From positions 3,668,451 to 3,732,450 of the forward strand of contig NW_003314263.1 of assembly GCF_000143415.4 (NCBI RefSeq): a DNA stretch of 64,000 nucleotides, given 5' to 3'. Made by a program: the position numbers and the translations under genes. This DNA is from Selaginella moellendorffii (Eukaryota; Plantae; Lycopodiophyta). How positions within the stretch are numbered: the stretch's first letter is position 1; the number at the start of each line of letters is the position of its first letter. Below the pieces are notes generated by a model. That model had not been told where the DNA came from. It was given only the letters and a program-made list of their open reading frames with translations, and made no database searches. Shown piece after piece: positions 5,364 to 64,000 of the stretch.

Positions 5364-6244
5364 TTAAAGAACAAACTTCATTGTCGGCCTGCTACTTCCG
5401 TCGAACTGTAAGCTCAGAGCTGCCAAGTTTGCAACTTTTGCAACGCACTCCAGCATTTCTGGAGTTCTAGCATCCAACCTCTTGTCGATCAACTCGCTGA
5501 TGGCTCCTCTTTTTATGACGCTCATTGCAAATGTGGACAGGTTTTTATCTGAAGCACAGCGAGAGAAGTCTACAGGCATCTGACCTGTTATTAGCTCCAA
5601 GATGACTACTCCAAAGCTGTAAACGTCGCTCTTATCTGTAAGCTGATAGCTTTGCTGGTACTATCTATGTAACCCAGTGTTCCATGCAGAGTTGTGGAAA
5701 TGTGAGTGGAATCTATGGGTACCAGCTTGGAAATCCCAAAGCCCGCTACTTTGGCCGTGAGTTTTTCGTCCAACAAGATGTTGGAGGATTTGACGTCCCG
5801 GTGATATATCAGTGGAGAAGCTGCAAAGTGAAGGTACGTAAGAGCCACTGCTGTCTCTGTCGCAATTCTTAAACGGTTTTTCCACGATAACGTATCTCCT
5901 CGTTTGTGCAGATGCTCGTACAGTGTTCCTCTTGGCACGAACTCGTAGACCACGAGAGGTACTTCGCTTTCTACGCAACATCCCATCACCTTGACGAGAT
6001 TTCTGTGTTTCACTTTGGAGAGGATGGTAACCTCGTTTAGAAACTGTTGAATGCGAGGGGCATTGCCGTTGTTGGCTTTCTTGATGGCCACCGTGGTGCC
6101 CCCTTGTAGACTGCCAAAGCTGCCAGTGCCTAGCTTGAGGTCGCTTCTGAAGCACTTGGTTGTTCCCCCCATCTCTCCCCAGGTAAAGATGCTTGAGTTT
6201 TCTTTGAAAATGGCCAAGTTTCTAGTGCCTGGCAGTGCGGACAA
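5364..6244 (-). pseudogene. WAK-like/receptor-like kinase domain pseudogene
   Basis: Motifs LGTGSFG, VAIKKA, QFLNEVTILSKVKHRNLVK and YHRDVKSSNILLD. DFG is altered to GFG, there is a frameshift near 5665, and the second frame (ELITGQMPVDF...RPTMKFVL*) ends prematurely. Confidence 0.85.
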
Positions 6245-6983
6245 TTTCGGCCGGAACTTCCAGAGAACAAATCCAAAAATGAGAAGAGCTGGTGCTGATG
6301 ATCAACGTGGAAGACACGTTTAAAGAGCAAGCTCTGTTCTCTAAGTCACGAGCTTATCGCTTTATCGCGCAGCCACCAGTCAAGGATCGTGTGCAACGAA
6401 GGAACATCATTTCGTTGCAAGTGTTTCGCGGGGTACGAAGGAAATGGTACCCGAGGCTACAGTGATCAACCAGGGAAAAGAAACCGCAGCTGAGAATGTT
6501 TCCAAGTGCGCAGAGAAGAAACGGGAGTTTTATCAGAACGCCAAGAAGGTGCAAAAGTATAATAAGAGGCTGAAGGAGCTCGATCCTCAAGTTTTGTAGG
6601 TACCTCTCTTTTAGAAAACGTAGTTTCTTTTAGAAACCTGAAGAGCCAGAAGGTAGAGAACGAAGATGGTGCCAGTGCCAGCCATAGCCAGAGTGGTGGA
6701 AGACAGGAGAGCAACTTCAGCTCCATCGAGAGGCTGAGGAACGAGTGTGAGATGAAGCAGAAGCCGCGAAGGAAGAGCGAGCAAAGGAAACTGCGGCAAG
6801 GCAGCAGGCTCGAGAGGAATCCGAACCAACGCCAAGATGTTAAAGAAAACTAGCCATGAAATTCCTAGTGGTACTTCATCACAAAAGGCATTGTCTATTA
6901 AAGCTTGTTTGCTTAAGCAAAACAACCTAATCACAAAAATGTCATGCGGAGATAAAGGGTTGGCGCAGCAAAAGGGAAAAGGC

Positions 6984-36858: not shown

Positions 36859-36927
36859 TGAATAAATATTTGGTGTGTGTTTGTGGATTATCAGAATATA
36901 TATTTAAGGAGAAACTAAATTATTGTA

Positions 36928-43870: not shown

Positions 43871-45169
43871 GATGCCAAGCGAGCCAAGAACGTTTTATTG
43901 TGTGGAGAGAATTTTGTTTTAAAAGTAAACATTTAATATTTATGAAAAGATAATAACTACAATTCAAGAACAAAGCCAAGAGGGAAAATAATAGTACTAT
44001 GTCCGTCTCAATCTCAACATCAACAAGTAATCACAAAAACCACTGAGTGGCAAAAATCAAAACTAAAAGCATATACTGTTGCATGGATTGGTTCATATGC
44101 ATGTTGCTGCAAGATTCTCTTTGATCCTAACCCTTGTTATGGACAACAGCATATGTTTGATTCCATGTTGCCAGACTCGGCATGACACTATATCGCCAAC
44201 TGCAAGGGCCAGTCTTCTTTGGTATGCCCTATCGCTGTCACCAAGGCATTCCAAGTCGCTATACTCCACTTAGAACAAGCCTCGTCCGACTTCAAGCCGC
44301 TCACATTGACCATCGAGCACAGTCCTTGTCAAAGTAGCGTTTTGTGTCTAGAAGACGATTCTCAGCATTATCTTGCTGAGGGCTCTGAACTTCCCTACTC
44401 CACAGCTCCCAAGAGAGAGCATCGTCGCCCAGATCCACGCCGATGGCTGTTCTTCGCGTGTCGCCTCGCGCCCATTCTGCCCTGCTCATGAAAAGCCTTG
44501 CATTGTGCTTGTTTGCATGCTCGTAAGTCCCATTCTCTTGTTTTGTTTCTCTTTAATGTTCTCCAGGCCGAATCAATGAAGCCAAGCAAAGTGTAACCAC
44601 AAGTTGACTCGGCTTTCTAATGCTTCTGGTGGGCCAGATCTTTAGCGCAACGTTCGAGTTTTCAGACGTCCATAAAACACAAAACCAATGAAGAGTCTAG
44701 CAAATGAAATAAAAGGAAGAGATAGAGATTCTTTCATGACTGCAAGCTGTATGTCGTCTATGGATGCTATGCTTTTTGGTGGAGAATGTGGCTGCTTCTA
44801 TTCCAATCGCTTGGGCAGTCCACCTAGTGTCGTAAATTATGAATATGGTTCTCTCACATTTTACACGCTTTGAAATGTTTATGGTATTTGGACTATTGCT
44901 TTGAGTTTCTATGGTACACCACATCTTAGATATATTATACTTAATTTCAGAAATATAAGACTATCAATAAGGGGGTGTCTTCAAAACCGAATGTGCATTT
45001 TGCTTTATAAAAAGAAAGTATGACTAAAGTGAATATGAAAAGAAAGAAGAATAAAGCTTGAAGTCGATACTTAGCATTTGGATCTTTGCTTTTCGGGCTA
45101 GTGTTTCTTTTGCAGTGTACCCCTTTCATTTTAACCTTGAATTTCGCTTGGAAGCACAGTTCTCCAGTT

Positions 45170-45600
45170 ATTTCATGCGAATGTACACACCAAAAGTAAC
45201 TGAAAAATACAAATTAGATTGCAATGTTGAGGTTGTAGTCGCTAGGAACGAGATCCCATTGAGCTGCTGGAGAAGTGTTTCTGAAGTGGCAAGGCGAGGC
45301 TCACAAGCCTTTATGAACACGTCACACCCACGAGCACAAACACTCCCATCTTAAACAATGGAAGTCCCACAACTTTGGTGACCTTTTACGATCAAACTTC
45401 TTGCAACTCCCTCATGACAATCCTAATAGTAATCCTTGATCTCTCTGCCGAAGTGCTCTCCCTTCTTTACAAACCTATGCGTCTGCTCTTAAAGCTTGTG
45501 CCGCCCAAGGTCAGGTGGCAAGGTGGCGCAGAGGATTTTCTAATGATGCCTGGAGGAATTTGCTATCGGGCATCCGCAGTTGTGACCCAAGAGGATCATG
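45170..45600 (-). pseudogene. Heavily deleted relic of the 4TM family (C-terminal part)
   Basis: gttgaggttgtagtcgctaggaacgagatcccattgagctgctggag...gtggcaag and cttaaacaatggaagtcc match 54308-54490. Confidence 0.75.
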
Positions 45601-46146
45601 GAATGACAGCGTAGGTAGTATATAAGCTAGTGTTTGAGAATTCGTGAGGCAGGCTGGTGCTCCTTAGGAGTTCGAATTCCCCAAGCTGGGATGTCTTTGA
45701 GAGTAGATACGAGAGAGTGATCATCTTGAGGCTTTCTGTCATCTGTATAAGTGGCTCGAGTTGGTTGTTGAGATTAGAGAGAATTGACCTGAATTTCATG
45801 GAGATTGTCGTGCAAATTTGAGAGCGTTCGCAGGAAGCAGCAAATAGTTCGGCCTCAGCCTGTGCACAGCGTACAAGAAGTCTGAAGCAGTTCATCTTGC
45901 AATAACACCACCAAAGCAGCGGTTGCTCGTTCTCCGGAAACAAGTCAATGTTCTTAGACCGCAGGAAGAGATCCTGGTATAACATCGAAGTTGTAGTTGT
46001 TCTCGCTCTTCATTTCCATGGTCTTTCCCTTCCGCAATAGAGTCTTGTGCATCCTGTGTTGCATGGCTGTGGTTCGATCCACCAACGTTGACGCCTCCAC
46101 TTCCAGCAAGCTCATGACAGAAGCATTAGCCAAGTCAACTAGTGGT

Positions 46147-47178
46147 TTAACTTTGTTTGACTTCCTTGATCTGAGAGATTGTGTTTTTGGTCACCAAGTT
46201 CCATGCGGGCATAGTGACAAGGAAAAGCTTCGCTTCCTCCAAAGACTTGGCATGCCCAATCGCTGCCAACAAGGCATTCCAAGTCACTATGCTCCGCTCG
46301 GGCATCTCCACAAACAAGTCTTGTGCAATCTCAAGCCGCTCGGATTGAGCATATGAAACGACGAGCACAGTCCACGGCACAAGATTCCATGCTGGCATCT
46401 TGTCAAAGTAGCTCTTTGCCTTGTCTAGAAGACGATTCTCGGCATATCCCTGGAGCAATGCCGTCCATGAGAAGACGTTCCTCTCCGGCATATTCTCGAA
46501 CAAGGCACACGCCTCTCTGTCATTGCCCCTCGCGGCAAATGCCGAAACCATTGCAGTAGCTGATATAGTGTCATGCTGGGGCATCTTTCGAAACAATCCT
46601 CGAGATGCTAAGATACCTCCGAGTCTTGCATATCCAGCAAGCATTGATGTCCATGCAATTGCATTGCGAGGTGACATAGAATCAAACATATGCTTCGCGC
46701 TACACATATACCCGCTTTGAGCATATGCTGTAAGCATTGTCGTCCACGAAACAATGTTGGGATTTGGAATCGAATCAAAAAGAATCTTTGCCTCGTCTAC
46801 ATGCCCGTGTTGTGCGTACGCTGCAAGCATTGTATTCCATGCAACAGTATCCCGATCGGGCATCTCGTCAAAGATAAGCTTAGCATCTTGCAGATACCCG
46901 TTTTGGGTATATGCAGTCATCATAACAGCCCACGAGAAAACGTTCTTAGCGTCGATGGCGTCAAACACTCGCTTGGCATCATTTGGGCTACCGCATTTGC
47001 CATACATCTGGACGAGCAAATTGGCCAGGAAGACGTTCTCTCTGTATTCCTTTTGATCTGAAATAATCTGGCTGTGTATCCAGCGACCCTTTGCCAAGTC
47101 CTTGGATTTGGCACAGTGGCGAATCACGGTTGCGAAGTCTTCAATGGCGTGGCTGGCTGTTCTCTTGAGAGCACTCAT
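46147..47178 (-). CDS. Short PPR protein (343 aa, mostly ~31-aa S-type repeats, no E/DYW)
   Basis: Tandem FDxMPxRxxxxWxxMLxxYAQxG repeats in an open frame. The C-terminus stops abruptly, so it may be non-functional. Confidence 0.75.
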   Translation of the reverse strand: MSALKRTASHAIEDFATVIRHCAKSKDLAKGRWIHSQIISDQKEYRENVFLANLLVQMYGKCGSPNDAKRVFDAIDAKNVFSWAVMMTAYTQNGYLQDAKLIFDEMPDRDTVAWNTMLAAYAQHGHVDEAKILFDSIPNPNIVSWTTMLTAYAQSGYMCSAKHMFDSMSPRNAIAWTSMLAGYARLGGILASRGLFRKMPQHDTISATAMVSAFAARGNDREACALFENMPERNVFSWTALLQGYAENRLLDKAKSYFDKMPAWNLVPWTVLVVSYAQSERLEIAQDLFVEMPERSIVTWNALLAAIGHAKSLEEAKLFLVTMPAWNLVTKNTISQIKEVKQS

Positions 47179-48070
47179 TAGAACGGCATTCTACACTACT
47201 AGTTTTATAAAAGACTTATTCTCTTTTGCCCTCTTGGATAAATAAATTGATCATAGCTCACGATACTGAAGTAATGTGTTATTATTGCTGCGTTGAAAGA
47301 TGCAATCATCCCTGGATATAATTCGTAAACCACACACATTATGTGGGGCTGGTCTTTTTGTGCTCGTAGTCTCAAGCCGCTGGATGCCGCAAAATTCGTA
47401 GGAGTGGATCTAGTCAGTTTCTATTTCTCTTGAGCTCTGCTGTTGAGGGTCATGAGATTTCTGGCGATTCGCGCTGAACACCTGCGCTATGATAGTAAAT
47501 TATTGTTATTCGATGCGCCTCAGGCACCAGGAGGAGACAAAACTTTACTCCACCATTGTGCTCCATGCCATGGTCGGGAATCTTCAAAAATACTTGGTTG
47601 TGGGTTGAGAAATTCTCTTGAATCCACATTCATGCGACAAGAGGAAACTTATAAAGCACTTGGAAACTTCTAATATATGGTTAGAAGAAAACATTGAGAA
47701 GCATAGCATAGAAGCTATGGCAATGCCACGGCCTACTTGTACGAGGAAGAAAAAAGGCGCGGCGAATGCAATCAAGCACGAGAGCTGGCTGTAAAGACGG
47801 ATGCTTGGAATCGTTGCTTTCAAATACAATAGATAAAGACTGCTTCATGAAAGCAAGCTGTATGCCTTAGAAAAGCAAAAGCTATACACATTCCAGATAC
47901 CAAAAGCATGTAACACATGAGAGATACTCTACATAGCATGAAATTGAGTGGGTTGACACTTTTTAGTTACTTTCATTTTAATCAGTTTCTCTTTTTCTTG
48001 AGCTCTATCTATATCCAAATTTTGTGGCATTCAACAAAGAATACACAGTAATTATATAAACATGCATGAT

Positions 48071-49975
48071 TTAAGCTGGTACAGTTACCTCTTCTTTTCT
48101 TTCCACGTAGCGCATGCGAACGTACACACCGAAAGTTACTGTGGCAAACACAAAGATTGCAAACGAGCACGCTGCAAAGAAGATAATCCAAGATGGAGTG
48201 ACTTGAACTGTTGAAGTTGTAGTCACCAATAACGAGATCCCAGGAAAGAGGATCTCGTCGAGCTGCTGGAGTAGTGTCTTTGAGGTGGCAAGCCGGACTT
48301 CCCACAGCTTTCAATCTGACAAACACGTTAAACATGTTCCACACGATCACACCCAAGAGTAGAAAACCCCGAATTCCCGTCTTAAACAGTGGAAGTCCTA
48401 TTGTCGCTTGCACAACTCTGGTGAAATTGCCTGTGCGCTTCAAGATCAGCGCCTCTGGTGAAATTGCCTGTGCGCTTCAAGATCAGCGCCTCCACCTTTT
48501 GCAAATCCCTGTTGAACATCCCCCAGATTGTCACAAGGATGGTCACCACTGCTGTGACAATCCTAACACTTATGTCTGATCTCTGCGACCAAGTGCTCTC
48601 CCATTCCTTCTTCATGAACCTATGTACGTCCGTTAGAGACTCCCTCAAGTGGTTCTGCAGATTTTGCATCTTTAGATCCTGCAAGCTTACTGTGCACAGC
48701 TTGTCCGCCAGCTTTGACTGGCCTTCGTCCATGCCACACAAGTAGTTGTCGTTAACATGGTTATCGAAGGTGTCCATGAGATCTTCCAGCGATGCCCGAA
48801 TTTCTAATGGGATCTCAATGACAGGGCCCACGGCAACAATTGGACTTTTCCAGCACTCCTGCAGATCTGAGTCTAGTGTGCCATCGCTCGGATCCTTCTT
48901 CTGGATCGTGTCCTCGGTGCAAGAAACGAAATCTTTGAGTATTTGGTTGGGACCACGGATTGCCTCCTCGAAGTTTGTGCTGAAATTCACGTCGAGTTGT
49001 ATCGATGTGTTCCGTCTCGGGCTGTAAGAGTACAACCTGGTTCTTTTCTCTTCCAAAGGATAGTCGTAATCGCAAAACGAATTGCCCTGGCCACACCCGG
49101 AGGCATTTAGTTTCAGAGGAAGAATCCCATCCTCATTCGAAGCTGTGCCAGTGATGTTCCGACCCACAAGGCAAAGGATACCATCGCAAGCGCACTGTAA
49201 GCTTGGAAAACCAATGTAAGAAACCACGTCCGGGGTGATGAGGATCGGGGAGGCCATGTTGCAAACCTGGCCTTCGTAGACGTAGTTCTTGATTCCTTTG
49301 CCAAAGCTTTTGAGATTCAATCCAGCTAGCGTTGCTCATAAAGTTTGTCAAATACACCGCACTATTGTCCAGATACAAATCGCTGCTCTCCACGCCATAT
49401 GTATTCTCTGAAGCCATCTTATACGGAACGCCAACCAAGAGCACTGCATATGATCCAGGAGCGGTCTGGACGATCGGCGTTGTGGAAAGACACGAATCCA
49501 AACAAATTTTTACACTCATCCCCCAGTAGACTGTCGTTTTCCACACCAGAGTCCTGCTTCTCTTGACAAACTCTCCTCCAAGAATGTGGGGATCTGGCGA
49601 GCTATACAAGGAGCTCTCATTTGTAGAGGTGGTATTGCCCTTAACACGCCAGATGCTTGCCCTCTGGTATGCAAGCGTTCCCCTCTGGGAGATGTTAAGA
49701 TCATCCGGGAGTGAGGAATCAGAGATCCACTGGTAGAATGGATCGGAGCTTGTGGCAAAGACGGTGGCTTCCCAGCACGTAGAGCACTTGTCCTCCTTGA
49801 CGATATCCAGGTAGTAATCCCCTGGAGGTGGTTTGGTCATCTCTGGAACGGCGAAGATGGCAGTGACCACAAGTGTCGCCACGAAAGTTGCAAAAGCGAT
49901 GCCAATCACAAGCGCTCCAGTGAGTTTCTCCCTTGGATTCAACATCAGTTTAGGTGCGCTTTGTGACTCCGCCAT
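48071..49975 (-). pseudogene. 4TM family pseudogene (cassette 1)
   Basis: Homologous to 54169-56103. It is split by an 8-bp deletion at ~49326, a 37-bp tandem duplication at 48418-48491 and further indels near 48240-48300. Confidence 0.88.
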
Positions 49976-50429
49976 AGCTCCAAACTTCTCTGCTTAAACA
50001 AATTATGCGGTGCATACTTGTTGGATTTGGAATAGAAGTTTATATAGAAAGGTTACTAACTTTTTTGTAAGTGGTGAATAAAGTGATTATTCCCTTTGCA
50101 TAGTGGCAGTACGTGAAAATTCTTTGTATGAACGTTGATTGATTGATTGAATTGATTGGCAACAACAACGAACGACGATGGAAAATTATGCCTATTCTAC
50201 ATGATCTTTCCCCTCCTGTAATAACAATAAGTATTGCTGTGATCTTATATAAAACTTGGTACAAATACTGTAAACATCTTATTAATGAACATAAAGGTAC
50301 TACTATAAAACATATAATGGATCAATTCTGGTCGTCGTCGCGGACGTGCACGAATGTGCTCCCTCTGTTCCCTCCCTATGAGGTATTTCTCACCATATTT
50401 ATTTAAAGCTAGCTAAAAAATATAAATTC

Positions 50430-51231
50430 TAGCGTTCCATCCCGAGCACATTTCCCTCCCGCCGAGAGATCCAAGGTCCCAGTCCGTGGATTCCTACGGT
50501 CGCAGCCTCCAGTTTAGCGTTGCGTCTGGAAACCTCTTGAGCTGGAGAGTCCCTGCCGAGTGTGTTCCCTACGTCCGGAGCTACACCACCGGGCCACAGT
50601 ACCAAGCCGACGTCCAAGCTGCAACGAGCTTGGCACTCCAGCAAGCCCAGACTTTCTGCGCCAGGCCGGCATTGATGCGTGGCTGTTTGATGTCGATGGT
50701 ACTCTGCTCTCAACCACGCCTTACTTTGCTACAAAGCAGTTCGGGTAACGTCTGGATCTATCTCTTCCTTCCCTGTTGAAAGTTAAAATTTTGCAGAGCT
50801 GGGAGCTACCACGACACTGACTTTAACTTGTGGGCCGCCAGAGGCGTCGGCCCGGCGATCGCTCCAGTGAGGACGCTTCTCAGAACGAACTGGACAGTGT
50901 TCCTCGTGTCCACACGCCCATAGTCACTGCGGCGTGCGACTGTGAGGAACTTACTCCGGGCGGGCTACAGAGGCTGGAAGAGGCTCTTCATGAGGTTTGT
51001 GAGCTTCAGATAACGATGGCTAGCCTGTCATGACGCCAAATGCTACTCTTGCTAGACGACCACTCTTCCAGACTCAAGACGAGAACCTTGTTGGAAAAAA
51101 GAAAGCAAACAAACTGTCCAGGGGTTTGGCCTGGGTATGACACCAAGGGAGCAACGAGCAACAAGAAAGACACAGGTGGTGACAAGAGCATTCCACAGTC
51201 TCAGGTGCCTGATCTCTCGGGTAACAAATAA
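50430..51231 (+). pseudogene. HAD-IIIB acid phosphatase pseudogene (5'-truncated, frameshifted)
   Basis: Lacks the signal-peptide start, has a 1-bp deletion at ~50666 before DAWLFDVDGT, and has deletions in exons 2 and 3. Confidence 0.85.
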
Positions 51232-52309
51232 AACTCAAGCAATACAATGCAAGAAACATACCTCAATAATAATGCAGATTTGGATTGTTAGAAAAAGAGT
51301 AATAATTGAAACTAGTACCTCTTTCTTTCACCACGATCACCACGATGGACACAGATATAGTTTTATCCGTTTACATGTTGGCTTTCACGTTGAATTTCGT
51401 TGCAATCTTCTGACCAAGCATACGATCCGCCTGCACACTTTCATGGTTGAGTTTGATCACATGTTGTATTTTCTTTATTGTCTAACCTGAGACCAGTAAG
51501 AGAGCCAGATGCTACGGATTTCGTGGGTGACGCGCGGGTCGGACAGAGCATCCACAACTCTCGCAATGAAACGCTCTTGCCTGGAAATGGAGCAGAGATT
51601 CAGTTAAAACATGACTAGCTGAGAGAGAGGTTTGAGATCTTGCCTGTCAGCAGGCCAGGAGCGGAACATTGCTCCTGGCTGAGCAAAGTTATTTTCCTTT
51701 TCAATCATCACCTACAAGAGAAAAACATTATTGCCAAAGCATAAAATGAGAAGCTGAAACTTAGACTAGCCAAACCTTTTATCGTCGACCACCGAGAGGG
51801 TGAGAAGGAATAGGCACTCGCTCAGCGTGACGGCAAGGATCAAAATGCGAAGGGGTTAGTTCACCTGCAAACACAGAATATAGAACGTAAAAGCAAGAGC
51901 GTTGCTTGTCATACCTCTTCGTCCCTGTGGGTGAAGTTCATGAATCCCTCGTGATGGTTGTTGTGATGAGCACACTTGGGAGCGTTCGCAGGAAGCAGCA
52001 AATAGTTCGACCTCAGCCTGTGCACAGCGTACAAGAAGTCTGTAGCAGTTTATCATTGCAATAACACCACCAAAGCAGTGGTTGCTCGTTCTCCAGAAAC
52101 AACTCAATGTTCTTAGACCACGGGAAGAGATCCTGGTATAACATCGAAGTTGTAGTTGTTCTCGCTCTTCATTTCCATGGTCTTTCCCTTCTGCAATAGA
52201 GTCTTGTGCATCCTGCGTTGCATAGCTGTGGTTCGATGCACCAACGATGACGCCTCCTCTTCCAGCAAGCTTGACAGAAGCATTAGCCAAGTCAACTAGT
52301 GGTATCACT

Positions 52310-53090
52310 TTATTTGACTTCCTTGATCTGAGAGATTGTGTTTTTGGTCACCAAGTTCCATGCGGGCATAGTGACAAGGAAAAGCTTCGCCTCCTCCAAA
52401 GACTTGGCATGCCCAATCGCTGCCAACAAGGCATTCCAAGTCACTATGCTCCACTCGGGCATCTCAACAAACAAGTCTTGTGCAATCTCAAGCCGCTCGC
52501 ATTGAGCATATGAAACGACGAGCACAGTCCACGACACAAGATTCCATGCTGGCATATTGTCAAAGTAGCTCTTTGCCTTGTCTAGAAGACCATTCTCGGC
52601 ATATCCCTGGAGCAATGCCGTCCAATAGAAGACATTCCTCTCCGGCATATTCTCGAACACGCCTCTCTGTCATTGCCCCCTCGCGGCAAATGCCGAAACC
52701 ATTGCAGTAGCTGCATGGACGTCAATGCTTGCTGGATACGCAAGACTCGGAGGTGTCTTAGCCTCTTGAGGATTCTTTCGAAAGATGCCCCAGCATGACA
52801 CTCTATCACAATTGCATTGCGAGGTGACATAGAATAAAACCCACGAAACAATGTTGGGATTTGGAATCGAATCAAACAGAATCTTTGCCTCCTCTACATG
52901 GCCGTGTTGTGCGTACGCTCCAAGCATTGTATTCCACGCAACGGTATCCCGATCGGGCATCTCGTCAAACATAAGCTTAGCATCTTGCGGATACCCGTTT
53001 TGGGCATATGCAGTCATCATAACTGCCCACGAGAAAACGTTCTTGGTGTCGATGGCGTCAAACACTCGCTTGGCATCATTTGGGCTACCG
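52310..53090 (-). pseudogene. PPR pseudogene (cassette 2) with internal micro-inversion and replaced 5' end
   Basis: Paralog of 46147-47178. 52712-52808 is inverted, there are deletions, and the N-terminus is replaced by foreign sequence at 53091-53228. Confidence 0.88.
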
Positions 53091-54168
53091 CTACAGCGAG
53101 CGCCAGTTCCAGAACCTGCTCCTGGCTGCCTACGCCCAGCACCTGACGGTGAGCATATATGTGGCGCCCTCAGAGCGTGCTAAGATGGAATAAACTGGCG
53201 TCGCTCCACTCGCTGCTCCACTCGCCCGCTCATTAGAACGGCATTCTACACTACTAGTTTTATAAAAGACTTATTCTCTTTTGCCCTCTTGGATACAAAA
53301 AAATTGATCATAGGTCACGATACTGAAGTAAGTTTTACAAATGCATTTCAAAATTTATTTCATAAAACTATTTGATTAATGTGCTATTGCTGCGTTGAAA
53401 GACGCAATCATCCCTTGACCCGCAAGAGCAGAGCTCAAGAGAAATAGAAAGTAGATCCACTCCTACGAATTTTGCGGCGAACAGCTTGAAACTATGAGCA
53501 CAAAAAGACCAGCCCCTGAGATTTTTTGGCGATTCGCACTACAACTGAACACCTGCACTGTATTGCTATGATAGTAAATTATTGTTATTCGGATGGGGCT
53601 GATATAAGAGCACCAGTGTGCCATGTCATGGTCGGGAATCTTCAAAAACACCCGGTGGTGCTGCAATCAAGCACGAGAGCTGGCTGTATGCAACCTCTAT
53701 TCCACGGATGCTTGGAATCGTTGCTTTCAAGTACAATAGATAAAGACTGCTTCATGAAAGCAAACTGTATGCCTTAGACAAGCAAAAGCTATACACATTC
53801 CAGATACCAAAAGCAGATACTCTACATAGCACGGCCACGGCCTACCTCTACGAGGAAGAAAAAGGCACGGCAGAGCTGGCTGTAAGTAACTTATATTCCA
53901 AAGACGGATGCTTGGAATCATTGCTTTCAAATACAATAGATAAAGGCTGCATCATGGAAGCAAGCTGTATGCCTTAGAAAAGCAAAAGCTATACAAATTC
54001 CAGATACCAAAAACATGTGACACATGAGAGATAGCATGAAATTGAGTGGATTGCCACTTTTTAGTTACTTTCACTTTAATCAGTTTCTCTTTTTCTTGAG
54101 CTCTATCTATATCCAATTTTTGTGGCACTCATCAAACAATACATATTAATTGTATAAACTTGCATGAT

Positions 54169-56103
54169 TTAAGCTGGTGCAATTACTTCTTCTTTTCTTT
54201 CCACGTAGCGCATGCGAACGTACACACCGAAAGTTACTGTGGCAAACACAAAGATTGCAAACGAGCACGCTGCAAAGAAGATAATCCAAGATGGAGTGAC
54301 TTGAACTGTTGAAGTTGTAGTCACCAAGAACGAGATCCCGTCGAGCTGCTGGAGTAGTGTTTTTGAGGTGGCAAGCCGGGGCTCACTTCCCACAGCATTC
54401 AAGCTGACAAACACGTTAAACATGTTCCACACGATCACACCCAAGAGCAGAAAACCCCGAATTCCCGTCTTAAACAGTGGAAGTCCTATTGTCGCTTCCA
54501 CAACCCTGGTGAATTTGCCTGCGCGCTTCAAGATCAACGCCTCCACCTCTTGCAAATCCCTGTTGAACATCCCCCAGATGGTCACAAGGATGGTCACCAC
54601 TGCTGTGACAATCCCGACAGTTATGTCTGATCTCTGCGACGAAGTGCTCTCCCATTCCTTCTTCACGAACCTATGCACGTCCGCCACCTTTAGAGACTCC
54701 CTCAAGCGCTTCTCCAGCTTTTGCATCTCGTTTGAGCTCTTTAGATCCTGCAAGCTTACCGTGCACAGCTTGTCCGCCAGTTTTGACTGGCCTTCGTCCA
54801 TGCCACACAAGAAGTTGTCGTCCTTGTCACTTGGAACCTTGTAATTGAAGGTGTCCATGAGACCTTCCAGCGAGACCCGAGATCGGTATCTTCTCACAGC
54901 GACTCTTCTGTTAAAGGCAGGGCTCACGGCAACAATTGGACTTTTCAAGCACTTCTGCAGATCTGACACTAGTGTGTCATCGCTCGGAGCCTTCTTCTGG
55001 ATCGTGTCCTCAGTGCAAGAAACAAAGTATTTGAGTATCTGGTTGGGACCAAAGATTACCACATCGAATGTTGTGCTGAAATTCACCTGGAGTAGTATCG
55101 ATGTCTCCCGACTCGGGCTGTAAGAGTAGAAGATGGCTCTATTCTCTTCCAAAGGATACCTATCGTAATCCCAAAACGAATTGCCCTGGCCACACCCGGA
55201 GGCATTTAGTTTCAGAGGAAAAATATCATCCTCATTCGAAGCTGTGCCAGTGATGTTCAGACCCACAAGGCAAAGGTTACCATCGCAAGCGCACTGGAAG
55301 CTTGGAAAACCCATGTAAGAAACCACGTCCGGGGTGACGAGGATCGGGGAGGCCCTGTTGCAAACCTGGCCTTCGTAGACGTAGTTCTTGATTCCTTTGC
55401 CAGAGCTTTTGAGCTTCAATCCAGCACCGGTTCTAGCGTTGCTCACAAAGTTTGTCAAATACACCGCACTATTGTCCAGATACAAAGCGCTGCTCTCCAC
55501 GGCATATGGTTCCTGTGAAGCCTTCCGATACGGAACGCCAACCAAGAGCGCTGCATATGATCCAGGAGCGGTCTGGACGATCGGGGTTGTGTAAAGACAC
55601 GAATCATCCTTGGATCCTGGCAAGGTGAAACAAGTTCTTACACTCATCCCCCAGTAGACTGTCATCTTCCACACCAGAGTCCTGCTTCTCTTGACAAGCT
55701 CTCCTCCAAGAATGCGGGGATCTGGCGAGCTATACAAAGAGCTCTCATTTGTAGAGGTGATATTGCCCGAAACACGCCAGATGCTGGCCCTCTGGTATGC
55801 AAGCGTTCCCCTCTGGGAGACGTCAAGAGCATCCGGGAGTGAGGAATCAGAGACCCACTGATAGAATGGATCAGAGCTTGTGGCAAAGACGGTGGCTTCC
55901 CAGCAAGTAGAGCACATGTCCTCCTTGACGATATCCGGGTAGTAATCCCCTGGAGGTGGCTTGCTCATCTCTGGAACCGCGAATATGGCAGTGACCACAA
56001 GTGTCGCCACGAAAGTTGCAAATGCGATGCCAATCACAAGCGCTCCAGTGAGTTTCTCCCTTGGATTCAACATCAGTTTAGCTGCGCCTTGTGACTCTGC
56101 CAT
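54169..56103 (-). CDS. Uncharacterised intronless 4TM protein with large Cys-rich extracellular loop (644 aa)
   Basis: Intact ORF. TM1 LVIGIAFATFVATLVVTAIFAV; several N-x-S/T sequons (NIT, NES, NAS, NFS); TM2-4 ITVGIVTAVVTILVTIWGMF, GFLLLGVIVWNMFNVFVSL and WIIFFAACSFAIFVFATVTFGVYV. Confidence 0.88.
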   Translation of the reverse strand: MAESQGAAKLMLNPREKLTGALVIGIAFATFVATLVVTAIFAVPEMSKPPPGDYYPDIVKEDMCSTCWEATVFATSSDPFYQWVSDSSLPDALDVSQRGTLAYQRASIWRVSGNITSTNESSLYSSPDPRILGGELVKRSRTLVWKMTVYWGMSVRTCFTLPGSKDDSCLYTTPIVQTAPGSYAALLVGVPYRKASQEPYAVESSALYLDNSAVYLTNFVSNARTGAGLKLKSSGKGIKNYVYEGQVCNRASPILVTPDVVSYMGFPSFQCACDGNLCLVGLNITGTASNEDDIFPLKLNASGCGQGNSFWDYDRYPLEENRAIFYSYSPSRETSILLQVNFSTTFDVVIFGPNQILKYFVSCTEDTIQKKAPSDDTLVSDLQKCLKSPIVAVSPAFNRRVAVRRYRSRVSLEGLMDTFNYKVPSDKDDNFLCGMDEGQSKLADKLCTVSLQDLKSSNEMQKLEKRLRESLKVADVHRFVKKEWESTSSQRSDITVGIVTAVVTILVTIWGMFNRDLQEVEALILKRAGKFTRVVEATIGLPLFKTGIRGFLLLGVIVWNMFNVFVSLNAVGSEPRLATSKTLLQQLDGISFLVTTTSTVQVTPSWIIFFAACSFAIFVFATVTFGVYVRMRYVERKEEVIAPA

Positions 56104-56378
56104 AGCTCCAATCTTCTCTGCTCAAACAGATTATGCGGTGGATATTCGTTGCATTGAAATAAAAGTTCAAATGGAAAGTTTACTTTAATATATCTTGTAA
56201 GTAAATGGCGAATAAAGCGATTATTCCCTTTGCATAATGATAGTACCTGAAAATTCTTTTGAACATGGCAGCGCAGAATGTAGTAGTCCCTTTATATTGA
56301 TTAATACAAAGCTTATATCATGCTTTTTAATAACAACGCCTATTAAGTCGTCCATCTCGAGAAACTTTCATAGTCACA

Positions 56379-57299
56379 ATGGTTTCTCTTCTTCCTATTG
56401 CTCGTCTTCTTCTTGTTCTTCTTCTTTCATCTCTTGATCTTACCTTCTCAATCGAGCTCGCTGGTGTGCTAAATCCCGAGGACATTTCCCTCCCGCCGAG
56501 AGATCCAAGGTCCCAGTCTGTGGATTCCTATTGTCGCAGCTTCCAGTTTAGCGTTGCGTCTGGAAACCTCTTGAGCTGGAGAGTCCCTGCCGAGTGTGTT
56601 CCATACGTCCGGAGCTACACCACCGGGCCACAGTACCAAGCCGACGTCCAAGCTGCAACGAGCTTGGCACTCCAGCAAGCCCAGACTTTCTGCGCCAGGC
56701 CCGGCATTGATGCGTGGCTGTTTGATGTCGATGGTACTCTCCTCTCAACCACGCCTTACTTTGCTACAAAGCAGTTCGGGTAACGTCTGGATCTATCTCT
56801 TCCTCCCCCTGTTGAAAGTTAATACTTTGCAGAGCTGGGAGCTACAACGACACTGACTTTAACTTGTGGGCCGCCAGAGGCGTCGCCCCGGCGATCGTTC
56901 CAGTGAGGACCTTCTACCGGACGCTTCTCAGGACAAACTGGACAGTGTTCCTCGTGTCCACTCGCCCAGAGTCACTGCGGCGTGCGACTGTGAGGAACTT
57001 ACTCCGGGCGGGCTACAGAGGCTGGAAGAGGCTCTTCATGAGGTTTGTGAGCTTTAGATAACGTTGGCTAGCCTGTCATGACACCAGATGCTACTCTTGC
57101 TAGACGACCACTCTTCCAGACCCAAGACGAGAACCTTGTTGAAATAAAGAAAGCAAACAAACTGTCCAGGGGCTCGGCCGAGAAATCGATGAAAGATGCT
57201 GGGTATGACACCAAGGGAGTAACGAGCAACAAGCAAGACACAGGTGGTGACAAGAGCATTCCACAGTCTCAGGTGCCTGATCTCTCGGGTAACAAATAA
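56379..57299 (+). CDS. Secreted HAD class IIIB acid phosphatase/VSP-like protein with non-homologous last exon
   Basis: Signal peptide; SYCRSFQFSVASGNL..W.VPAECVPYV..Y..GPQYQAD; motif I DAWLFDVDGTLLS. Exons 56379-56779, 56833-57042 and 57104-57299 (inferred splicing). Confidence 0.8.
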
Positions 57300-58383
57300 A
57301 ACTCAAGCAATACAATGCAAGAAACATACCTCAATAATAATGCAGATTTGGATTGTTAGAACAAGAGTAATAATTGAAACTAGTACCTCTTTATTTCACC
57401 ACGATCACCACGATGGACACAGATATAGTTTTATCCGTTTACATGTTGGCTTTCACGTTGAATTTCGTTGCAATCTTCTGACCAAGCGTACGATCCGCCT
57501 GCACACTTTCATGGTTGAGTTTGATCACATGCTGTATTTTCTTTATTGTCTAACCTGAGACCAATAAGAGAGCCAGATGCTACGGATTTCCTGGGTGACG
57601 CGCGGGTCGGACAGAGCATCCACAACTCTCGCAATGAAACGCTCTTGCCTGGAAGTGCAGCAGAGATTCAGTTAAAACATGATTAGCTGAGAGAGAGGTT
57701 TGAGATCTTGCCTATCAGCAGGCCCGGAGCGGAACCTTGCTCCTGGCTGAGCAAAGTTATTTTCCTTTTCAATCATTGCCAAAGCATAAAATGAGAGGCT
57801 GGAAGTTAGACTAGCCAAACCTTTTCTCGTCGACCACCGAGAGGGTGAGAAGGAATATGCACTCGCTCAGCGTGACGGCAAGGATCAAAACGCGAAGGGA
57901 AATAGTTCACCTGCAAACACAGAATATAGAACGTAAAAGCAAGAGCGTTGCTTGTCATACCTCTTCGTCCCTGTGGGTGAAGTTCATGAATCCCTCGTGA
58001 GATGAGCACACTTGGGAGCATTCGCAGGAAGCAGCAAATAGTTCGGCCTCAGCCTGTGCACAGCGTACAAGAAGTCTGTAGCAGTTTATCATTGCAATAA
58101 CACCACCAAAGCAGCGGTTGCTCGTTCTCCGGAAACAACTCAATGTTCTCAGACCGCGGGAAGAGATCCTGGTATAACATCGAAGTTGTAGTTGTTGTCG
58201 CTCTTCATTTCCATGGTCTTTCCCTTCTGCAATAGAGTGTTGTGAATCCTGCGTTGCATAGCTGTGGTTCGATCCACCAACGATGACGCCTCCTCTTCCA
58301 GCAAGCTTGACAGAAGCATTAGCCAAGTCAAGTAGTGGTTTCACTTTGTTTGACTTCCTTGATCTGAGAGATCGTGTTTTTAG

Positions 58384-59366
58384 TCAGTTCCATGCGGGCA
58401 TAGTGACAAGGAAAAGCTTCGCCTCCTCCAAAGACTTGGCATGCCCAATCGCTGCCAACAAGGCATTCCAAGTCACTATGCTCCGCTCGGGCATCTCAAC
58501 AAACAAGTCTTGTGCAATCTCAAGCCGCTCGCATTGAGCATATGAAACGACGAGCACAGTCCACGACACAAGATTCCATGCTGGCATCTTGTCAAAGTAG
58601 CTCTTTGCCTTGTCTAGAAGACGATTCTCGGCATATCCCTGGAGCAATGCCGTCCATGAGAAGACGTTCCTCTCCGGCATATTCTTGAACAAGGCACACG
58701 CTTCTCTTGCATTGCCCCTCGCGGCAAATGCCGAAATCATTGCAGTAGCTGATATAATGTCATGCTGGGGCATCTTTCGAAAGAATCCTCGAGAGGTTAA
58801 GATACCTCCGAGTCTTGCATATCCAGCAAGCATTGATGTCCATGCAATTGCATTTCGAGGTGACATAGAATCAAACATATGCTTCGCGCTACACATATAC
58901 CCGCTTTGGGCATATGCTGTAAGCATTGTTGTCCACGACACAAAGTTGGGATTTGGAATCGAATCAAAAAGAATCTTTGCCTCGTCTACATTGCCATGCT
59001 GTGCGTACGCTCCAAGCATTGTATTCCATGCAACAGTATCACGATCGGGCATCTCATGAAAGATAAGCTTAGCATCTTGCGGATACCCGTTTTGGGTATA
59101 TGCAGTCATCATAACTGCCCACGAGAAAACGTTCTTGGCGTCGATGATGTCAAACACTCGCTTGGCATCATTTGGGCTGCCGCATTTGCCATACATCTGG
59201 ACGAGCAAATTGGCAGGAAGACGTTCTATCTGTAGTCCTTTTTATCTGAAATGATCTGGCTGTGTATCCAGCGACCCTTTGCCAAGTCCTTGGATTTGGC
59301 ACAGTGACGAATCACGGTTGCGAAGTCTTCAATGGCGTGGTTGGCTGCTCTCTTGAGAGCACTCAT
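58384..59366 (-). pseudogene. PPR pseudogene (cassette 3)
   Basis: ATG at 59366 as in cassette 1. A 1-bp deletion at ~59214 (ttggcagg vs ttggccagg) shifts the frame, and a small deletion at ~58386 creates an early stop. Confidence 0.85.
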
Positions 59367-60306
59367 TAGAACGGCATTCTACACTACTAGTTTTATAAAA
59401 GATCCATTCTCTTTTGCCCACTTGGATAAAAAAAATTGATCATAGGTCACGATACTAACTATTGCTGCGTTGAAAGACGCAATCATCCCTGGATATAATT
59501 CTTAAACCACACACATTATGTGGGGCTGTTTGTGGTCATAGTCTGAAGCTGTTCGCCGCAAAATTCGTAGGAGTGGATCTACTTTCTATTTCTCTTGAGC
59601 TCTGCTCTGGAGGGTGATGAGATTGTTATTTGGCTCGGACTGATATCAGAGGTCGTTAAAACTCCTCAGGCACCAGGAGGAGACAAAACTTCACTCCACC
59701 AGTGTGCTCCATGGTCGGGAATCTTCAAAAACACCCGGTGGTGGGCTGAGAAATTCTCTTAAATCCACATTCATGCAACAAGAGTTATCATATACGGTTA
59801 GAAGAGAACATTGAGCAGCATAGCATAGAAGCTATGGCAATGTACGAGGAAGGAAAAAGGCGCGGCGAATGCAATCAAGCACGAGAGCTGGCTGCAAAGA
59901 CGGATGCTTGGAACTGTTGCTTTCAAATACAATAAAGACTGCTTAGCTGGAATCGTTGCTTTCAAATACAATACATAATGACTGCTTAGCTGTATGCCTT
60001 AGAAAAGCAATAGCTATACACATTCCAGATACCAAAAGCATGTAACACATGAGAAGATACTCTACATAGCATGAGATTGAGTGGGTTGCCACTTTTTAGT
60101 TACTTTCATTTTAATCAGTTTCTCTTTTTCCTGAGCTCTATCTATATCCAATTTTTGTGGCACTCATCAAACAATACATATTAATTGTATAAACTTGCAT
60201 GATTTAAGCTGGTACAGTTACCTCTTCTTTTCTTTCCAAAGAAAAGAAGAGCTCTATCTATATCCAAATTTTGTGGCATCCAAGAATACATATTAATTAG
60301 CATGAT

Positions 60307-62250
60307 TTAAGCTGGTATAGTTACCTTTTCTTTTCTTTCCACGTAGCGCATACGAACGTACACACCGAAAGTTACTATGGCAAACACAAAGATTGCAAAC
60401 GAGCACGCTGCAAATAAGATAATCCAAGATGGAGTGACTTGAACTGTTGAAGTTGTAGTCACCAAGAACGAGACCCCGTCGAGCTGCTGGAGTAGTGTTT
60501 TTGAGGTGGCAAGCCGGGGCTCACTTCCCACAGCATTCAAGCTGACAAACACGTTAAACATGTTCCACACGATCACACCCAAGAGCAGAAAACCCCGAAT
60601 TCCCGTCTTAAACAGTGGAAGTCCTATTGTCGCTTCCACAACCCTGGTAAATTTGCCTGCGCGCTTCAAGATCAACGCCTCCACCTCTTGCAAATCCCTG
60701 TTGAACATCCCCCAGATGGTCACAAGGATGGTCACCACTGCTGTGACAATCCCAACAGTTATGTCTGATCTCTGCGACGAAGTGCTCTCCCATTCCTTCT
60801 TCACGAACCTAAGCACGTCCGCCACCTTTTGAGACTCCCTCAAGCGCTTCTCCAGCTTTTGCATCTCGTTTGAGCTCTTTAGATCCTGCAAACTTACCGT
60901 GCACAGCTTGTCCACCAGCTTCGACTGGCCTTCGTCCATGCCACACAAGAAGTTGTCGTCCTTGTCGCTTGGAACCTTGTTATTGAAGGTGTCCATGAGA
61001 ACTTCCAGCGATGCCCGAGATTGGTGTCTTCCCACAGCGGATGTTCTGCCAAAGGGAGGGCTCACGGCAACAATTGGATCTCTCAAGCACTCCTTCAGAT
61101 CTGCCACCAGTGTGGTATCGTTCGGAGCCTTCTTCTGGATCGTGTGCTCGGTGCAAGAAACGAAATCTTTGAGTCGCTGGATCGTGTCCTCGGCACCAAA
61201 GATTACCCAATTGAATCTTATGCTGAAATTTACCTGGAGTAGTATCGATGTGTTCCATGTCGGGCTGTAAGAGTAGAAGATGGTTCTATTCTCTTCCAAA
61301 GGATAGATATCGTAATCCCAAAACGAATTGCCCTGGCCACACCCGGAGGCATTTAGTTTCAGAGGAAAAATATCATCCTCATTCGAAGCTGTGCCAGTGA
61401 AGTCCAGACCCACAAGGCAAAGGTTACCATCGCAAGCGCACTGGAAGCTTGGAAAACCCATGTAAGAAACCACGTCCGGGGTGACGAGGATCGGGGAGGC
61501 CCTATTGCAAACCTGGCCTTCGTAGACGTAGTTCTTGATTCCTTTGCCAGAGCTTTTGAGCTTCAATCCTGCACCGGTTCTAGCGTTGCTCACAAAGTTT
61601 GTCAAATACACCGCACTATTGTCCAGATACAAAGCGCTGCTCTCCACGGCATATGGTTCCTGTGAAGCCTTCCGATACGGAACGCCAACCAAGAGCGCCG
61701 CATATGATCCAGGAGCGGTCTGGACGATCGGGGTTGTGTAAAGACACGAATCATCCTTGGATCCTGGCAAGGTGAAACAAGTTCTTACACTCATCCCCCA
61801 GTAGACTGTCATCTTCCACACCAGAGTCCTGCTTATCTTGACAAACTCTCCTCCAAGAATGTGGGGATCTGGCGAGCTATACAAAGAGCTCTCATTTGTA
61901 GAGGTGATATTGCCCGAAACACGCCAGATGCTGGCCCTCTGGTATGCAAGCGTTCCCCTCTGGGAGACGTCAAGAGCATCCGGGAGTGAGGAATCAGAGA
62001 CCCACTGGTAGAATGGATCGGAGCTTGTGGCAAAGACGGTGGCTTCCCAGCAAGTAGAGCACATGTCCTCCTTGACGATATCTGGGTAGTAATCCCCTGG
62101 AGGTGGCTTGCTCATCTCTGGAACCGCGAAGATGGCAGTGACCACAAGTGTCGCCACGAAAGTTGCAAATGCGATGCCAATCACAAGCGCTCCAGTGAGT
62201 TTCTCCCTTGGATTCAACATCAGTTTAGCTGCGCCTTGTGACTCTGCCAT
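60307..62250 (-). CDS. Uncharacterised intronless 4TM protein with large Cys-rich extracellular loop (647 aa)
   Basis: Intact ORF, close paralog of 54169-56103. Confidence 0.88.
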   Translation of the reverse strand: MAESQGAAKLMLNPREKLTGALVIGIAFATFVATLVVTAIFAVPEMSKPPPGDYYPDIVKEDMCSTCWEATVFATSSDPFYQWVSDSSLPDALDVSQRGTLAYQRASIWRVSGNITSTNESSLYSSPDPHILGGEFVKISRTLVWKMTVYWGMSVRTCFTLPGSKDDSCLYTTPIVQTAPGSYAALLVGVPYRKASQEPYAVESSALYLDNSAVYLTNFVSNARTGAGLKLKSSGKGIKNYVYEGQVCNRASPILVTPDVVSYMGFPSFQCACDGNLCLVGLDFTGTASNEDDIFPLKLNASGCGQGNSFWDYDIYPLEENRTIFYSYSPTWNTSILLQVNFSIRFNWVIFGAEDTIQRLKDFVSCTEHTIQKKAPNDTTLVADLKECLRDPIVAVSPPFGRTSAVGRHQSRASLEVLMDTFNNKVPSDKDDNFLCGMDEGQSKLVDKLCTVSLQDLKSSNEMQKLEKRLRESQKVADVLRFVKKEWESTSSQRSDITVGIVTAVVTILVTIWGMFNRDLQEVEALILKRAGKFTRVVEATIGLPLFKTGIRGFLLLGVIVWNMFNVFVSLNAVGSEPRLATSKTLLQQLDGVSFLVTTTSTVQVTPSWIILFAACSFAIFVFAIVTFGVYVRMRYVERKEKVTIPA

Positions 62251-62480
62251 AGCTCCAATCTTCTCTGCTCAAACAGATTATGCGGTGGATTGGAATGAAA
62301 GCTTATATAGTCACTTTTAAGTTTAATACTGTAAGTAAATGGAGAATAAAGTGATTATTCCCTTCGCATAATGGGAGTATGGGTGTATAGCTTTATGTTT
62401 ATTAATAAGATGCTTATATCATGCTTTTCATCAACAACGCCTATTAAGTCGTCCATCTCGAGAGAACTTTCGTAGTCACA

Positions 62481-63401
62481 ATGGTTTCTTTTCTTGCTCT
62501 TGCTCGATTTCTCCTTGTTCTTCTTCTTTCATCGTTTGATCTTGCCTTCTCAATCGAGCTCGCTGGTGTGCTAAATCCCGAGGACATTTCCCTCCCACCG
62601 AGAGATCCAAGGTCCCAGTCCGTGGATTCCTACTGTCGCACCTTCCAGTTTAGCGTTGCATCTGGAAACCTCTTGAGCTGGAGGGTCCCTGCCGAGTGTG
62701 TTCCATACGTCCGGAGGTACACCACCGGGCCACAGTACCAAGCCGACGTCCAAGCTGCAACGAGCTTGGCACTACAGCAAGCCCAGACTTTCTGCGCCAG
62801 GCCCGGCATTGATGCGTGGCTGTTTGATGTCGATGGTACTCTCCTCTCAACCACGCCCTACTTTGCTACAAAGCAGTTCGGGTAACGTCTGGATCTATCT
62901 CTTCCTCCCCCTGTTGAAAGTTAATACTTTGCAGAGCTGGAAGCTACAACGACACTGACTTTAACTTGTGGGCCGCCAGAGGCGTCGCCCCGGCGATCGT
63001 TCCAGTGAGGACCTTCTACCGGACGCTTCTCAGGACGAACTGGACAGTGTTCCTCGTGTCCACACGCCCAGAGTCACTGCGGCGTGTGACTGTGAGGAAC
63101 TTACTCCGGGCGGGCTACAGAGGCTGGAAGAGGCTCTTCATGAGGTTTGTGAGCTTTAGATAACGTTGGCTAGCCTGTCATGACACCAGATGCTACTCTT
63201 GCTAGACGACCACTCTTCCAGACTCAAGACGAGAACCTTGTTGAAATAAAGAAAGCGAACAAACTGTCCAGGGGCTCGGCCGAGCAATCGATGAAAGATG
63301 CTGGGTATGACACCAAGGGAGCAACGAGCAACAAGCAAGACACAGGTGGTGACAAGAGCATTCCACAGTCTCTGGTGCCTGATCTCTCGGGTAACAAATA
63401 A
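62481..63401 (+). CDS. Secreted HAD class IIIB acid phosphatase/VSP-like protein with non-homologous last exon
   Basis: Same structure as the 56379 copy. Exons 62481-62881, 62935-63144 and 63206-63401 (inferred splicing). Confidence 0.8.
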
Positions 63402-64000
63402 AACTCAAGCAATACAATGCAAGAAACATACCTCAATAATAATGCAGATTTCGATTGATTAATAATTGAAACTAGTACCTCTTTATTTCACCACGATCAC
63501 CACGATGGACACAGATATTTTATCCGTTTACATGTTGGCTTTCACGTTGAGTTTTGTTGCAATCTTCTGACCAAGCATACGATCCGCCTGCACACGTTTC
63601 ATGGTTGAGTTTGATCACATGCTGTCTTTTCTTTCTTGTCTAACCTGAGACCAGTAAGAGAGCCAGATGCTACGGATTTCGTGGGTGACGCGCGGGTCGG
63701 ACAGAGCATCCACAACTCTCGCAATGAAACGCTCTTGCCTGGAAGAGGAGCAGAGATTCAGTTAAAACATGACTAGCTGAGAGAGAGGTTTGAGATCTTG
63801 CCTGTCAGCAGGCCAGGAGCGGAACCTTGCTCCTGGCTGAGCAAAGTTATTTTCCTTTTCAATCATCACCTACAAGAGAAAAACATTATTGCCAAAGCAT
63901 AAAATGAGAAGATGAAAGTTAGACTAGCCAAACCTTTTCTCGTCGACCACCGAGAGGGTGAGAAGGAATAGGCACTCGCTCAGCGTGACGGCAAGGATCA

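Follow-up and report, generated by a model that had tools for sequence, protein, structure and literature searches.

Diversifying selection on a defined patch of a predicted extracellular domain in a tandem array of Selaginella moellendorffii membrane-protein genes

A stretch of 64,000 nucleotides of the Selaginella moellendorffii genome (in the following, the window) contains two intact genes of an orphan membrane-protein family, copies A and B, whose differences are concentrated in one segment of 108 codons, and the question raised by this locus is what has driven that segment, here called the patch, apart. In the codon alignment of A and B, 31 of the 108 residues in codons 315-422 differ and B carries a 3-residue insertion, compared with 14 differing residues among the 536 elsewhere (3 in codons 1-282, 2 more at codons 283-284, none further before codon 315, and 9 in codons 423-644). 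Thirty of 44 differences fall into a single 108-codon window, as against a mean of 12.5 and a maximum of 22 in 20,000 shuffles. These counts agree with the original prediction, made from the letters alone, which had noticed few N-terminal differences, roughly 30 substitutions plus an indel in the patch and about nine differences after it, and both patches lie where it had placed them. From the A/B pair alone, the case for selection is borderline (patch dN 0.18-0.20, dS 0.08-0.10, omega 1.9-2.4, with p ranging from 0.02 to 0.08 according to the assumed transition bias). Coordinates of the features are given in Table 1.

Table 1. Positions in the window of the gene copies and of the features of copy A, copy B and the array
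Feature	Position	Strand
Copy A, intact single ORF, 644 aa, orphan multi-pass membrane protein, JGI SELMODRAFT_404654	54169..56103	-
Copy B, intact ORF, 647 aa, SELMODRAFT_404657	60307..62250	-
Copy P, pseudogene	48071..49975	-
Decayed C-terminal fragment of the same family, edge of the array	45162..45460	-
Distant paralog, 621 aa, ~40% identical, same architecture, O-type subfamily	34993..36858	+
Hypervariable patch of A, codons 315-422, predicted extracellular/lumenal domain, contains C363 and C385	54838..55161	-
Hypervariable patch of B	60976..61308	-
Hot spot 1, codons 315-348, top sites 324, 331, 333, 347, 348	55060..55161	-
Hot spot 2, codons 396-422, loop after C385, substitutions and in-frame indels, alignment partly ambiguous	54838..54918	-
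Hydrophobic helix 1 of A (aa 14-42), signal anchor or signal peptide	55978..56064	-
Predicted transmembrane helix 2 (aa 488-513)	54565..54642	-
Predicted transmembrane helix 3 (aa 541-571)	54391..54483	-
Second outside loop (aa 576-604), predicted beta-hairpin, family-wide conserved Thr-Thr-Thr motif	54292..54378	-
Predicted transmembrane helix 4 (aa 606-635), with a short basic tail after it	54199..54288	-
15-nt stretch at the insertion of B, repeats 61135-61149 with one mismatch	61177..61191	-
Three tandem units, ~6.1 kb each	45812..64000	.

The part of the window from 44169 to 64000 is identical base by base to S. moellendorffii scaffold GL377567.1. Each of the tandem units comprises a PPR gene or its remnant, a gene of the family, an acid phosphatase gene and a catalase fragment; the family gene is broken in unit 1 (copy P) and intact in units 2 (A) and 3 (B). 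Copy P shows an 8-nt deletion near codon 225, a 37-nt duplication after codon 520 and a 5-nt deletion near codon 575, and its patch, at about 48750-49060, represents a third patch type. Because scaffold GL377609.1 carries the same flanking genes as the window, with flanks about 98.6% identical, it probably represents the other haplotype. Four further copies are found on it, two of them intact (913 and 925), one frameshifted near codon 555 (922) and one broken (917). The A-type patch is common to both haplotypes (A and 913 differ in it by 3 non-synonymous and no silent changes), whereas the other patch types differ between them; a B-type patch was not seen on the other haplotype within the 72 kb examined. 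An assembly artefact was considered as the source of the patch and rejected, since a nearly identical A-type patch is present on the other haplotype and all differences in intact copies keep the reading frame.

Concerning the surroundings of the array, a stretch of around 18 kb carrying cupin, transferase and RsgA-like gene models (L008:14300-33000) interrupts the array of the other haplotype, an interruption absent from the array of the window. RefSeq model XP_024541022.1 (L008:10001-39381) fuses copy 913 with the final part of a fragment situated 27 kb downstream and is probably an annotation artefact of the repeats. The PPR remnant of unit 2 contains a small inversion relative to units 1 and 3 (52712-52808). 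A spacer of 69 nt separates the end of the 621-aa paralog from a 691-aa PPR gene that follows it on the same strand (34993-39003; L005:9929-13015), and as members of both subfamilies sit just upstream of PPR genes, the pairing of family gene and PPR gene may predate the array. Elsewhere in the window, a separate tandem duplication with a unit of about 5.95 kb encodes large proteins with an internal F-box that are 97% identical (6837-9296 and 12936-15248, plus strand), and an apparently truncated protein-kinase fragment, resembling receptor-like kinases by eye, is found at 5606-6244 (minus strand).

The proteins possess four hydrophobic helices, at residues of about 14-42, 488-513, 541-571 and 606-635, on which hydropathy and the structural model agree. 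The description of the proteins as four-transmembrane is a prediction, since the first helix may serve either as a signal anchor or as a signal peptide that is cleaved off; cleavage may occur in some members. Around 450 residues lie between helices 1 and 2 and contain 12 family-invariant cysteines together with all N-glycosylation sequons of A, and family members have 5-14 sequons, nearly all of them in this large domain. Basic residues are found in the loop after helix 2 and in the C-terminal tail of 10-15 residues. The location of the cysteines and sequons, and the basic character of the inner loop and tail, suggest that the large domain, and with it the patch, faces outward or into a lumen. 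Both cysteines of the patch, C363 and C385, are retained throughout the seven A-type copies and show no variation in the alignment of the family, in line with the original observation that cysteines are kept.

At least five subfamilies were recognized, down to 26% identity, with an hhalign probability of 100% between the extremes, and an invariant hairpin, WG.S.R.C-x10/11-C, is found in the family. No relatives outside S. moellendorffii occurred among the word-search and HMMER cluster-representative matches, where those of other Selaginella are perhaps absent or hidden in 50% clusters; the word search of proteins missed known family members. Pfam gave no family at its cut-off for whole proteins, for 13 members or for pieces (no kinase, LRR, malectin or DUF247), and no match for the family was obtained in the PDB by sequence and profile. 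A feature search of the ESM Atlas returned nothing for A and, for P0017 of another subfamily, two oomycete clusters at 0.75, which is below use. The AlphaFold model reached a pLDDT of 35 from one sequence and of 45 from 13 sequences, and fold searches with the pLDDT-45 model (PDB, VIA-wide, Atlas and viral libraries) yielded nothing beyond generic helical bundles and rows without significance. No paper was found naming any of six family gene identifiers. The best explanation is that these genes represent an undescribed, old Selaginella family of predicted membrane glycoproteins, with a short segment ahead of helix 1 and with neither a kinase nor another signalling domain.

For the selection tests, seven A-type copies were used (A, B, P, 913, 917, 922 and 925), three of them broken; gaps were placed at the breaks and no repair was made. 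The codon models (M1a/M2a and a double-hit model; GY94 with F3x4) and a PHI-like test were run with our own code and not with PAML. Over the tree of the seven copies, dS is 0.185 in the patch compared with 0.248 and 0.186 in the flanks, whereas dN rises about 3.5-fold, to 0.62 compared with 0.185 and 0.163. Silent divergence thus stays flat along the gene and only dN goes up; the outcome that the original prediction had named as refuting selection, a dS elevated to the same extent as dN, is not observed over the array, and a local mutation hot spot is rejected on account of the flat silent rate. In all 21 pairs, patch dN exceeds patch dS, the latter ranging from 0.04 to 0.10 as in the flanks and being zero for A/913. 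Changes at four-fold sites amount to 0.20 per site in the patch, which has only 20 such sites, compared with 0.29 and 0.195 in the flanks, and those at second codon positions to 0.49 compared with 0.16 and 0.11. The patch omega is 3.36 for the seven copies (p=2e-5; bootstrap 2.1-6.5), and 3.68 for the four intact copies. For P, 917, 922 and 925, which had no part in delimiting the patch, it is 3.17 (p=0.003). When the most variable segment was picked in neutral simulations, an omega of at least 3.36 was obtained in 1 of 100. M2a was preferred over M1a with likelihood-ratio statistics of 30-82, placing 10-14% of sites at an omega of 5-7.

Within the patch, the signal is concentrated in the two hot spots. 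Codons 315-339 alone give an omega of 8 (p=0.01), whereas the Cys-linked middle (codons 356-396) gives 1.3, which is not significant; in the low-confidence model, the first hot spot forms a beta-hairpin and a short helix. Across copies the net charge of the patch varies from +4 to -7 and sequons are gained and lost. Smaller variable spots exist outside the patch, at codons 157-168 of A (around 55600-55635) and 92-97, with an omega of 1.2 that is not significant; the loop flanked by C158 and C169 varies from copy to copy, is deleted in P and is variable in the P0017-type subfamily, too.

Other subfamilies repeat this pattern to different degrees. The P0017-type subfamily comprises five proteins, P0017 and P0028-P0031 (SELMODRAFT_411765, 411768, 441369, 437909 and LOC9642340), which are 81-89% alike and about 30% identical to A. 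At the protein level, to which this comparison is limited, the homologous region is their most variable one (0.66 compared with 0.28 extra states per residue; 0 of 20,000 permutations), and variability peaks at the same two places as the A-type hot spots. Two O-type loci differ in the second hot spot, a loop of 34 codons, by seven amino-acid changes and an indel, and by no silent change. The P0019 subfamily, of which only the first exon was compared, shows relaxation only (patch omega 0.95, flanks 0.33 and 0.61). As the original prediction had stated, the pseudogene and the 621-aa paralog likewise diverge most in this region (P: dN 0.21 compared with 0.06 and 0.04 in the flanks; paralog: identity 28% compared with 49% and 40%).

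The reading preferred here, with a probability of around 0.5, is that of a kinase-less surface protein with a predicted binding face under diversifying selection: the patch would be an exposed face meeting a changing partner outside the cell, and the patch types would differ in specificity. The original proposal is partly supported: the selection holds, and the patch may be a specificity-determining surface of an immune or self-recognition receptor.

The main rival, unlikely in our judgement, assigns the same selection to escape instead of recognition. The protein would be a housekeeping membrane protein (a channel, an adhesion protein or a wall link) that serves as a docking site, and its patch would change to evade a molecule of a pathogen, virus or herbivore. 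An omega above 1 on an exposed face is predicted equally in that case, so that recognition and escape would look alike at the sequence level. The three sequons in the patch of B that are absent from A would fit shielding, the family lacks a signalling domain, and the single-copy subfamilies P0015 and P0022 are conserved between haplotypes. On the other hand, repeated amplification, patch types existing side by side and frequent loss of copies fit a repertoire for recognition better.

Rather improbable is a neutral origin, in which relaxed constraint and clustered mutation act on a tolerant surface region and an omega above 1 results from double or templated changes, from misalignment next to indels and from the small number of silent sites. 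Constraint on the gene is indeed weak, as three of the seven copies are broken and the flanks are near neutrality over the array; near-identical flanks, as originally described, are thus a property of the A/B pair and not of the array, where the flanks evolve at an omega of 0.48-0.97, and among them only the N-terminal half, in intact or near-intact copies, shows significant purifying selection. Double hits occur at a 3-8 times higher rate in the patch than in the flanks, false positives of M2a are known where double-nucleotide changes are present (PMC6332903), one templated insertion was found (see below), and once codons 397-414 are left out the codon-position test is no longer significant (p=0.12). 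When ambiguous codons are dropped, the patch omega falls to 2.1-2.7 (p=0.03-0.13). However, the double-hit model itself gives an omega of 3.2 for the patch (p=3e-4), of 2.1-4.4 in every data set, and of 2.1-2.2 (p=0.03-0.05) after the additional removal of poorly aligned codons. Restricted to columns with single-nucleotide differences, the patch still shows 35 non-synonymous to 7 synonymous changes (omega 2.2, p=0.045), compared with 105 to 67 in the flanks; furthermore, the silent rate is not raised and all indels in intact copies are in frame. The diversifying selection of the original prediction is therefore upheld without A and B, under the double-hit model and against the window-picking null, and, weakly, after removal of ambiguous codons. 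Selection on the patch is well supported, at a strength of no more than two- to three-fold.

Very unlikely is a role in self, kin or gamete recognition, in which patch types would be compatibility specificities (sperm-egg, spore or cell-cell) comparable to Papaver PrpS or Ipomoea SE. These two and the grass DUF247 proteins are kinase-less, polymorphic "atypical receptors" of self-incompatibility; PrpS and SE are lineage-restricted and multi-pass, SE has four predicted helices, and a channel role has been proposed (PMC13033167). The Selaginella family is likewise multi-pass, kinase-less and polymorphic, with relatives found in one species only, and its haplotypes carry different sets of patch types. 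PrpS, however, is a protein of about 20 kDa with a 35-residue loop that is linked to its ligand gene (PMC13033167), whereas the Selaginella protein has about 70 kDa and a Cys-rich domain of 450 residues, and no linked polymorphic gene for a secreted ligand was seen in the repeat unit. The locus is a multi-copy array with pseudogenes and not a single locus with many alleles, and the presence of the A-type patch on both haplotypes is likewise unexpected under self-recognition. No homology to PrpS, SE or DUF247 was detected, all database matches being from S. moellendorffii.

Gene conversion, which the original prediction had named as the alternative, would explain the pattern if it homogenised the flanks while the patch retained older, neutral divergence. 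The copies do recombine, as neighbouring informative sites are more compatible than expected by chance (0 of 5,000 permutations in the PHI-like test). B groups with A in the flanks and weakly with copy 917 in the patch. Copy 913, the first on the other haplotype (L008:8150-12900), has B sequence upstream and A sequence in the coding region from about codon 130 onwards and downstream; it is thus either a B/A chimera, or a crossover of this kind gave rise to B and A. For the A/B pair, dS is also higher in the patch (0.087) than in the flanks (0.028 and 0.047). Nevertheless, conversion would move dN and dS together, whereas over all copies only dN rises, and the flank dS of A and B agrees with the divergence of 1-4.5% seen in most well-aligned sequence elsewhere in the repeat unit. 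As the sole cause conversion is largely refuted and has very little probability left, and it survives as a contributor. A further source of difference lies within the gene itself: the insertion of B repeats 15 nt located 42 nt further along, so that part of the A/B patch difference was copied from inside the gene. Finally, that part of the patch is an in-frame intron and hence not protein is extremely improbable. RefSeq XP_024543923.1 does omit codons 340-355 (48 nt, 55039-55086, minus strand, bounded by GT and AG), and other gene models omit other short in-frame pieces. This reading is rejected, however, since F342 within the omitted codons does not vary even in members of 26% identity, the twin copy retains these codons in its RefSeq model, and the patch omega is 3.5 without them; alternative splicing within the patch at 55039-55086 is possible.

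Among known systems, the Arabidopsis OAK / At5g59670 cluster of malectin-like RLKs is the one in which tandem arrangement, gene conversion and positively selected sites in one part of the ectodomain are found together (PMC3136440). The Selaginella array resembles it in its tandem organization, in conversion between copies and in divergence confined to one ectodomain part, whereas OAK is a single-pass malectin-LRR kinase and the Selaginella proteins have four helices and no kinase, LRR or malectin match. For plant NLR and LRR-RLP resistance clusters such as RPP8 (bioRxiv 10.1101/694240), a birth-and-death array, exchange among paralogs and differences between haplotypes in the number and type of copies are described that are comparable to those seen here; the Selaginella protein is unrelated to these and has neither NB-ARC nor LRR. 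With RLKs and RLPs in general, the family shares the positively selected ectodomain patch in a tandem cluster. Pfam recognized none of their known ectodomains (LRR, malectin, lectin, LysM, DUF26 etc.) in 13 members, and instead of a single span the proteins have four hydrophobic helices, with a short tail and no kinase.

With respect to the overall outline, the predicted order of helix, outside domain of beta-strands, helix, inner loop, helix, hairpin and helix is similar to that of connexins, pannexins, LRRC8 and the claudin-fold TARPs, which fill most of the weak Foldseek rows obtained with the pLDDT-45 model (best E 0.43, rmsd 5-12 A); in VIA, the same model gave Z scores of 4.2-5.2 for large-pore channels and of 5.6 for TARP, aligned over the helices. 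This resemblance is a lead only. Four helices, both ends inside and a second-loop hairpin, which characterize large-pore channels, are suggested for the family by hydropathy and the pLDDT-45 model, with the reservation that helix 1 may be a signal peptide. Connexins, pannexins, innexins and LRRC8 have conserved cysteines in both outside loops, whereas residues 572-604 of A contain no cysteine and no invariant one exists in the second loop of the family; moreover, the first loop of the Selaginella protein has about 450 residues and no Pfam match. The first loop of claudins, TARPs and SUR7 bears the signature GLW..C-x8-10-C, to which the family hairpin is loosely similar, and that piece has no Pfam match either. 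In tetraspanins, the large Cys-rich loop is the second outside loop, whereas in the Selaginella family the large domain is the first loop and the second has around 33 residues. The family evolves like the OAK cluster and has an outline like PrpS and SE, but by its sequence and predicted architecture it does not qualify as an RLK/RLP, as one of these self-incompatibility receptors or as a tetraspanin.

Returning to the binding face under diversifying selection, part of the mechanism proposed for it is observed in the array: copies are amplified with the ~6-kb unit, exchange sequence and are often lost, and codons 315-422 fix amino-acid changes at 2-3 times the synonymous rate on a disulfide scaffold that is kept. 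Each patch type would then confer its own binding specificity toward a fast-changing foreign partner, most likely a microbial one. New patch types would come about by point changes, small in-frame indels, templated copying and swaps between copies, and unequal crossing-over would set copy number. More speculatively, binding might be signalled through the membrane helices, by formation of oligomers or channels or by a partner kinase, as such routes have been proposed for kinase-less "atypical receptors". Taken furthest, and with a low probability, the family could constitute a new lycophyte class of plant surface immune receptor. Such a receptor would be a four-helix, channel-like membrane protein into which a large Cys-rich domain is inserted; the diversifying face of this domain would sense microbial ligands and gate ion flow directly, so that neither a kinase nor an LRR or NLR would take part.

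The pattern itself is familiar from R-gene and RLK clusters; here a known evolutionary pattern is found, with statistical support, on an undescribed and unnamed protein family without domain match. Selection on a defined region of 108 residues, repeated in a second subfamily, points to the part of the protein that would meet a changing partner, and the natural patch variants (A, B, 925, 922 and P types) may be used for swap experiments. If the protein is a receptor, a kinase-less multi-pass design would be added to the recognition biology of plants other than flowering plants; if it is a target under attack, the patch would mark a hitherto unknown host-microbe contact.
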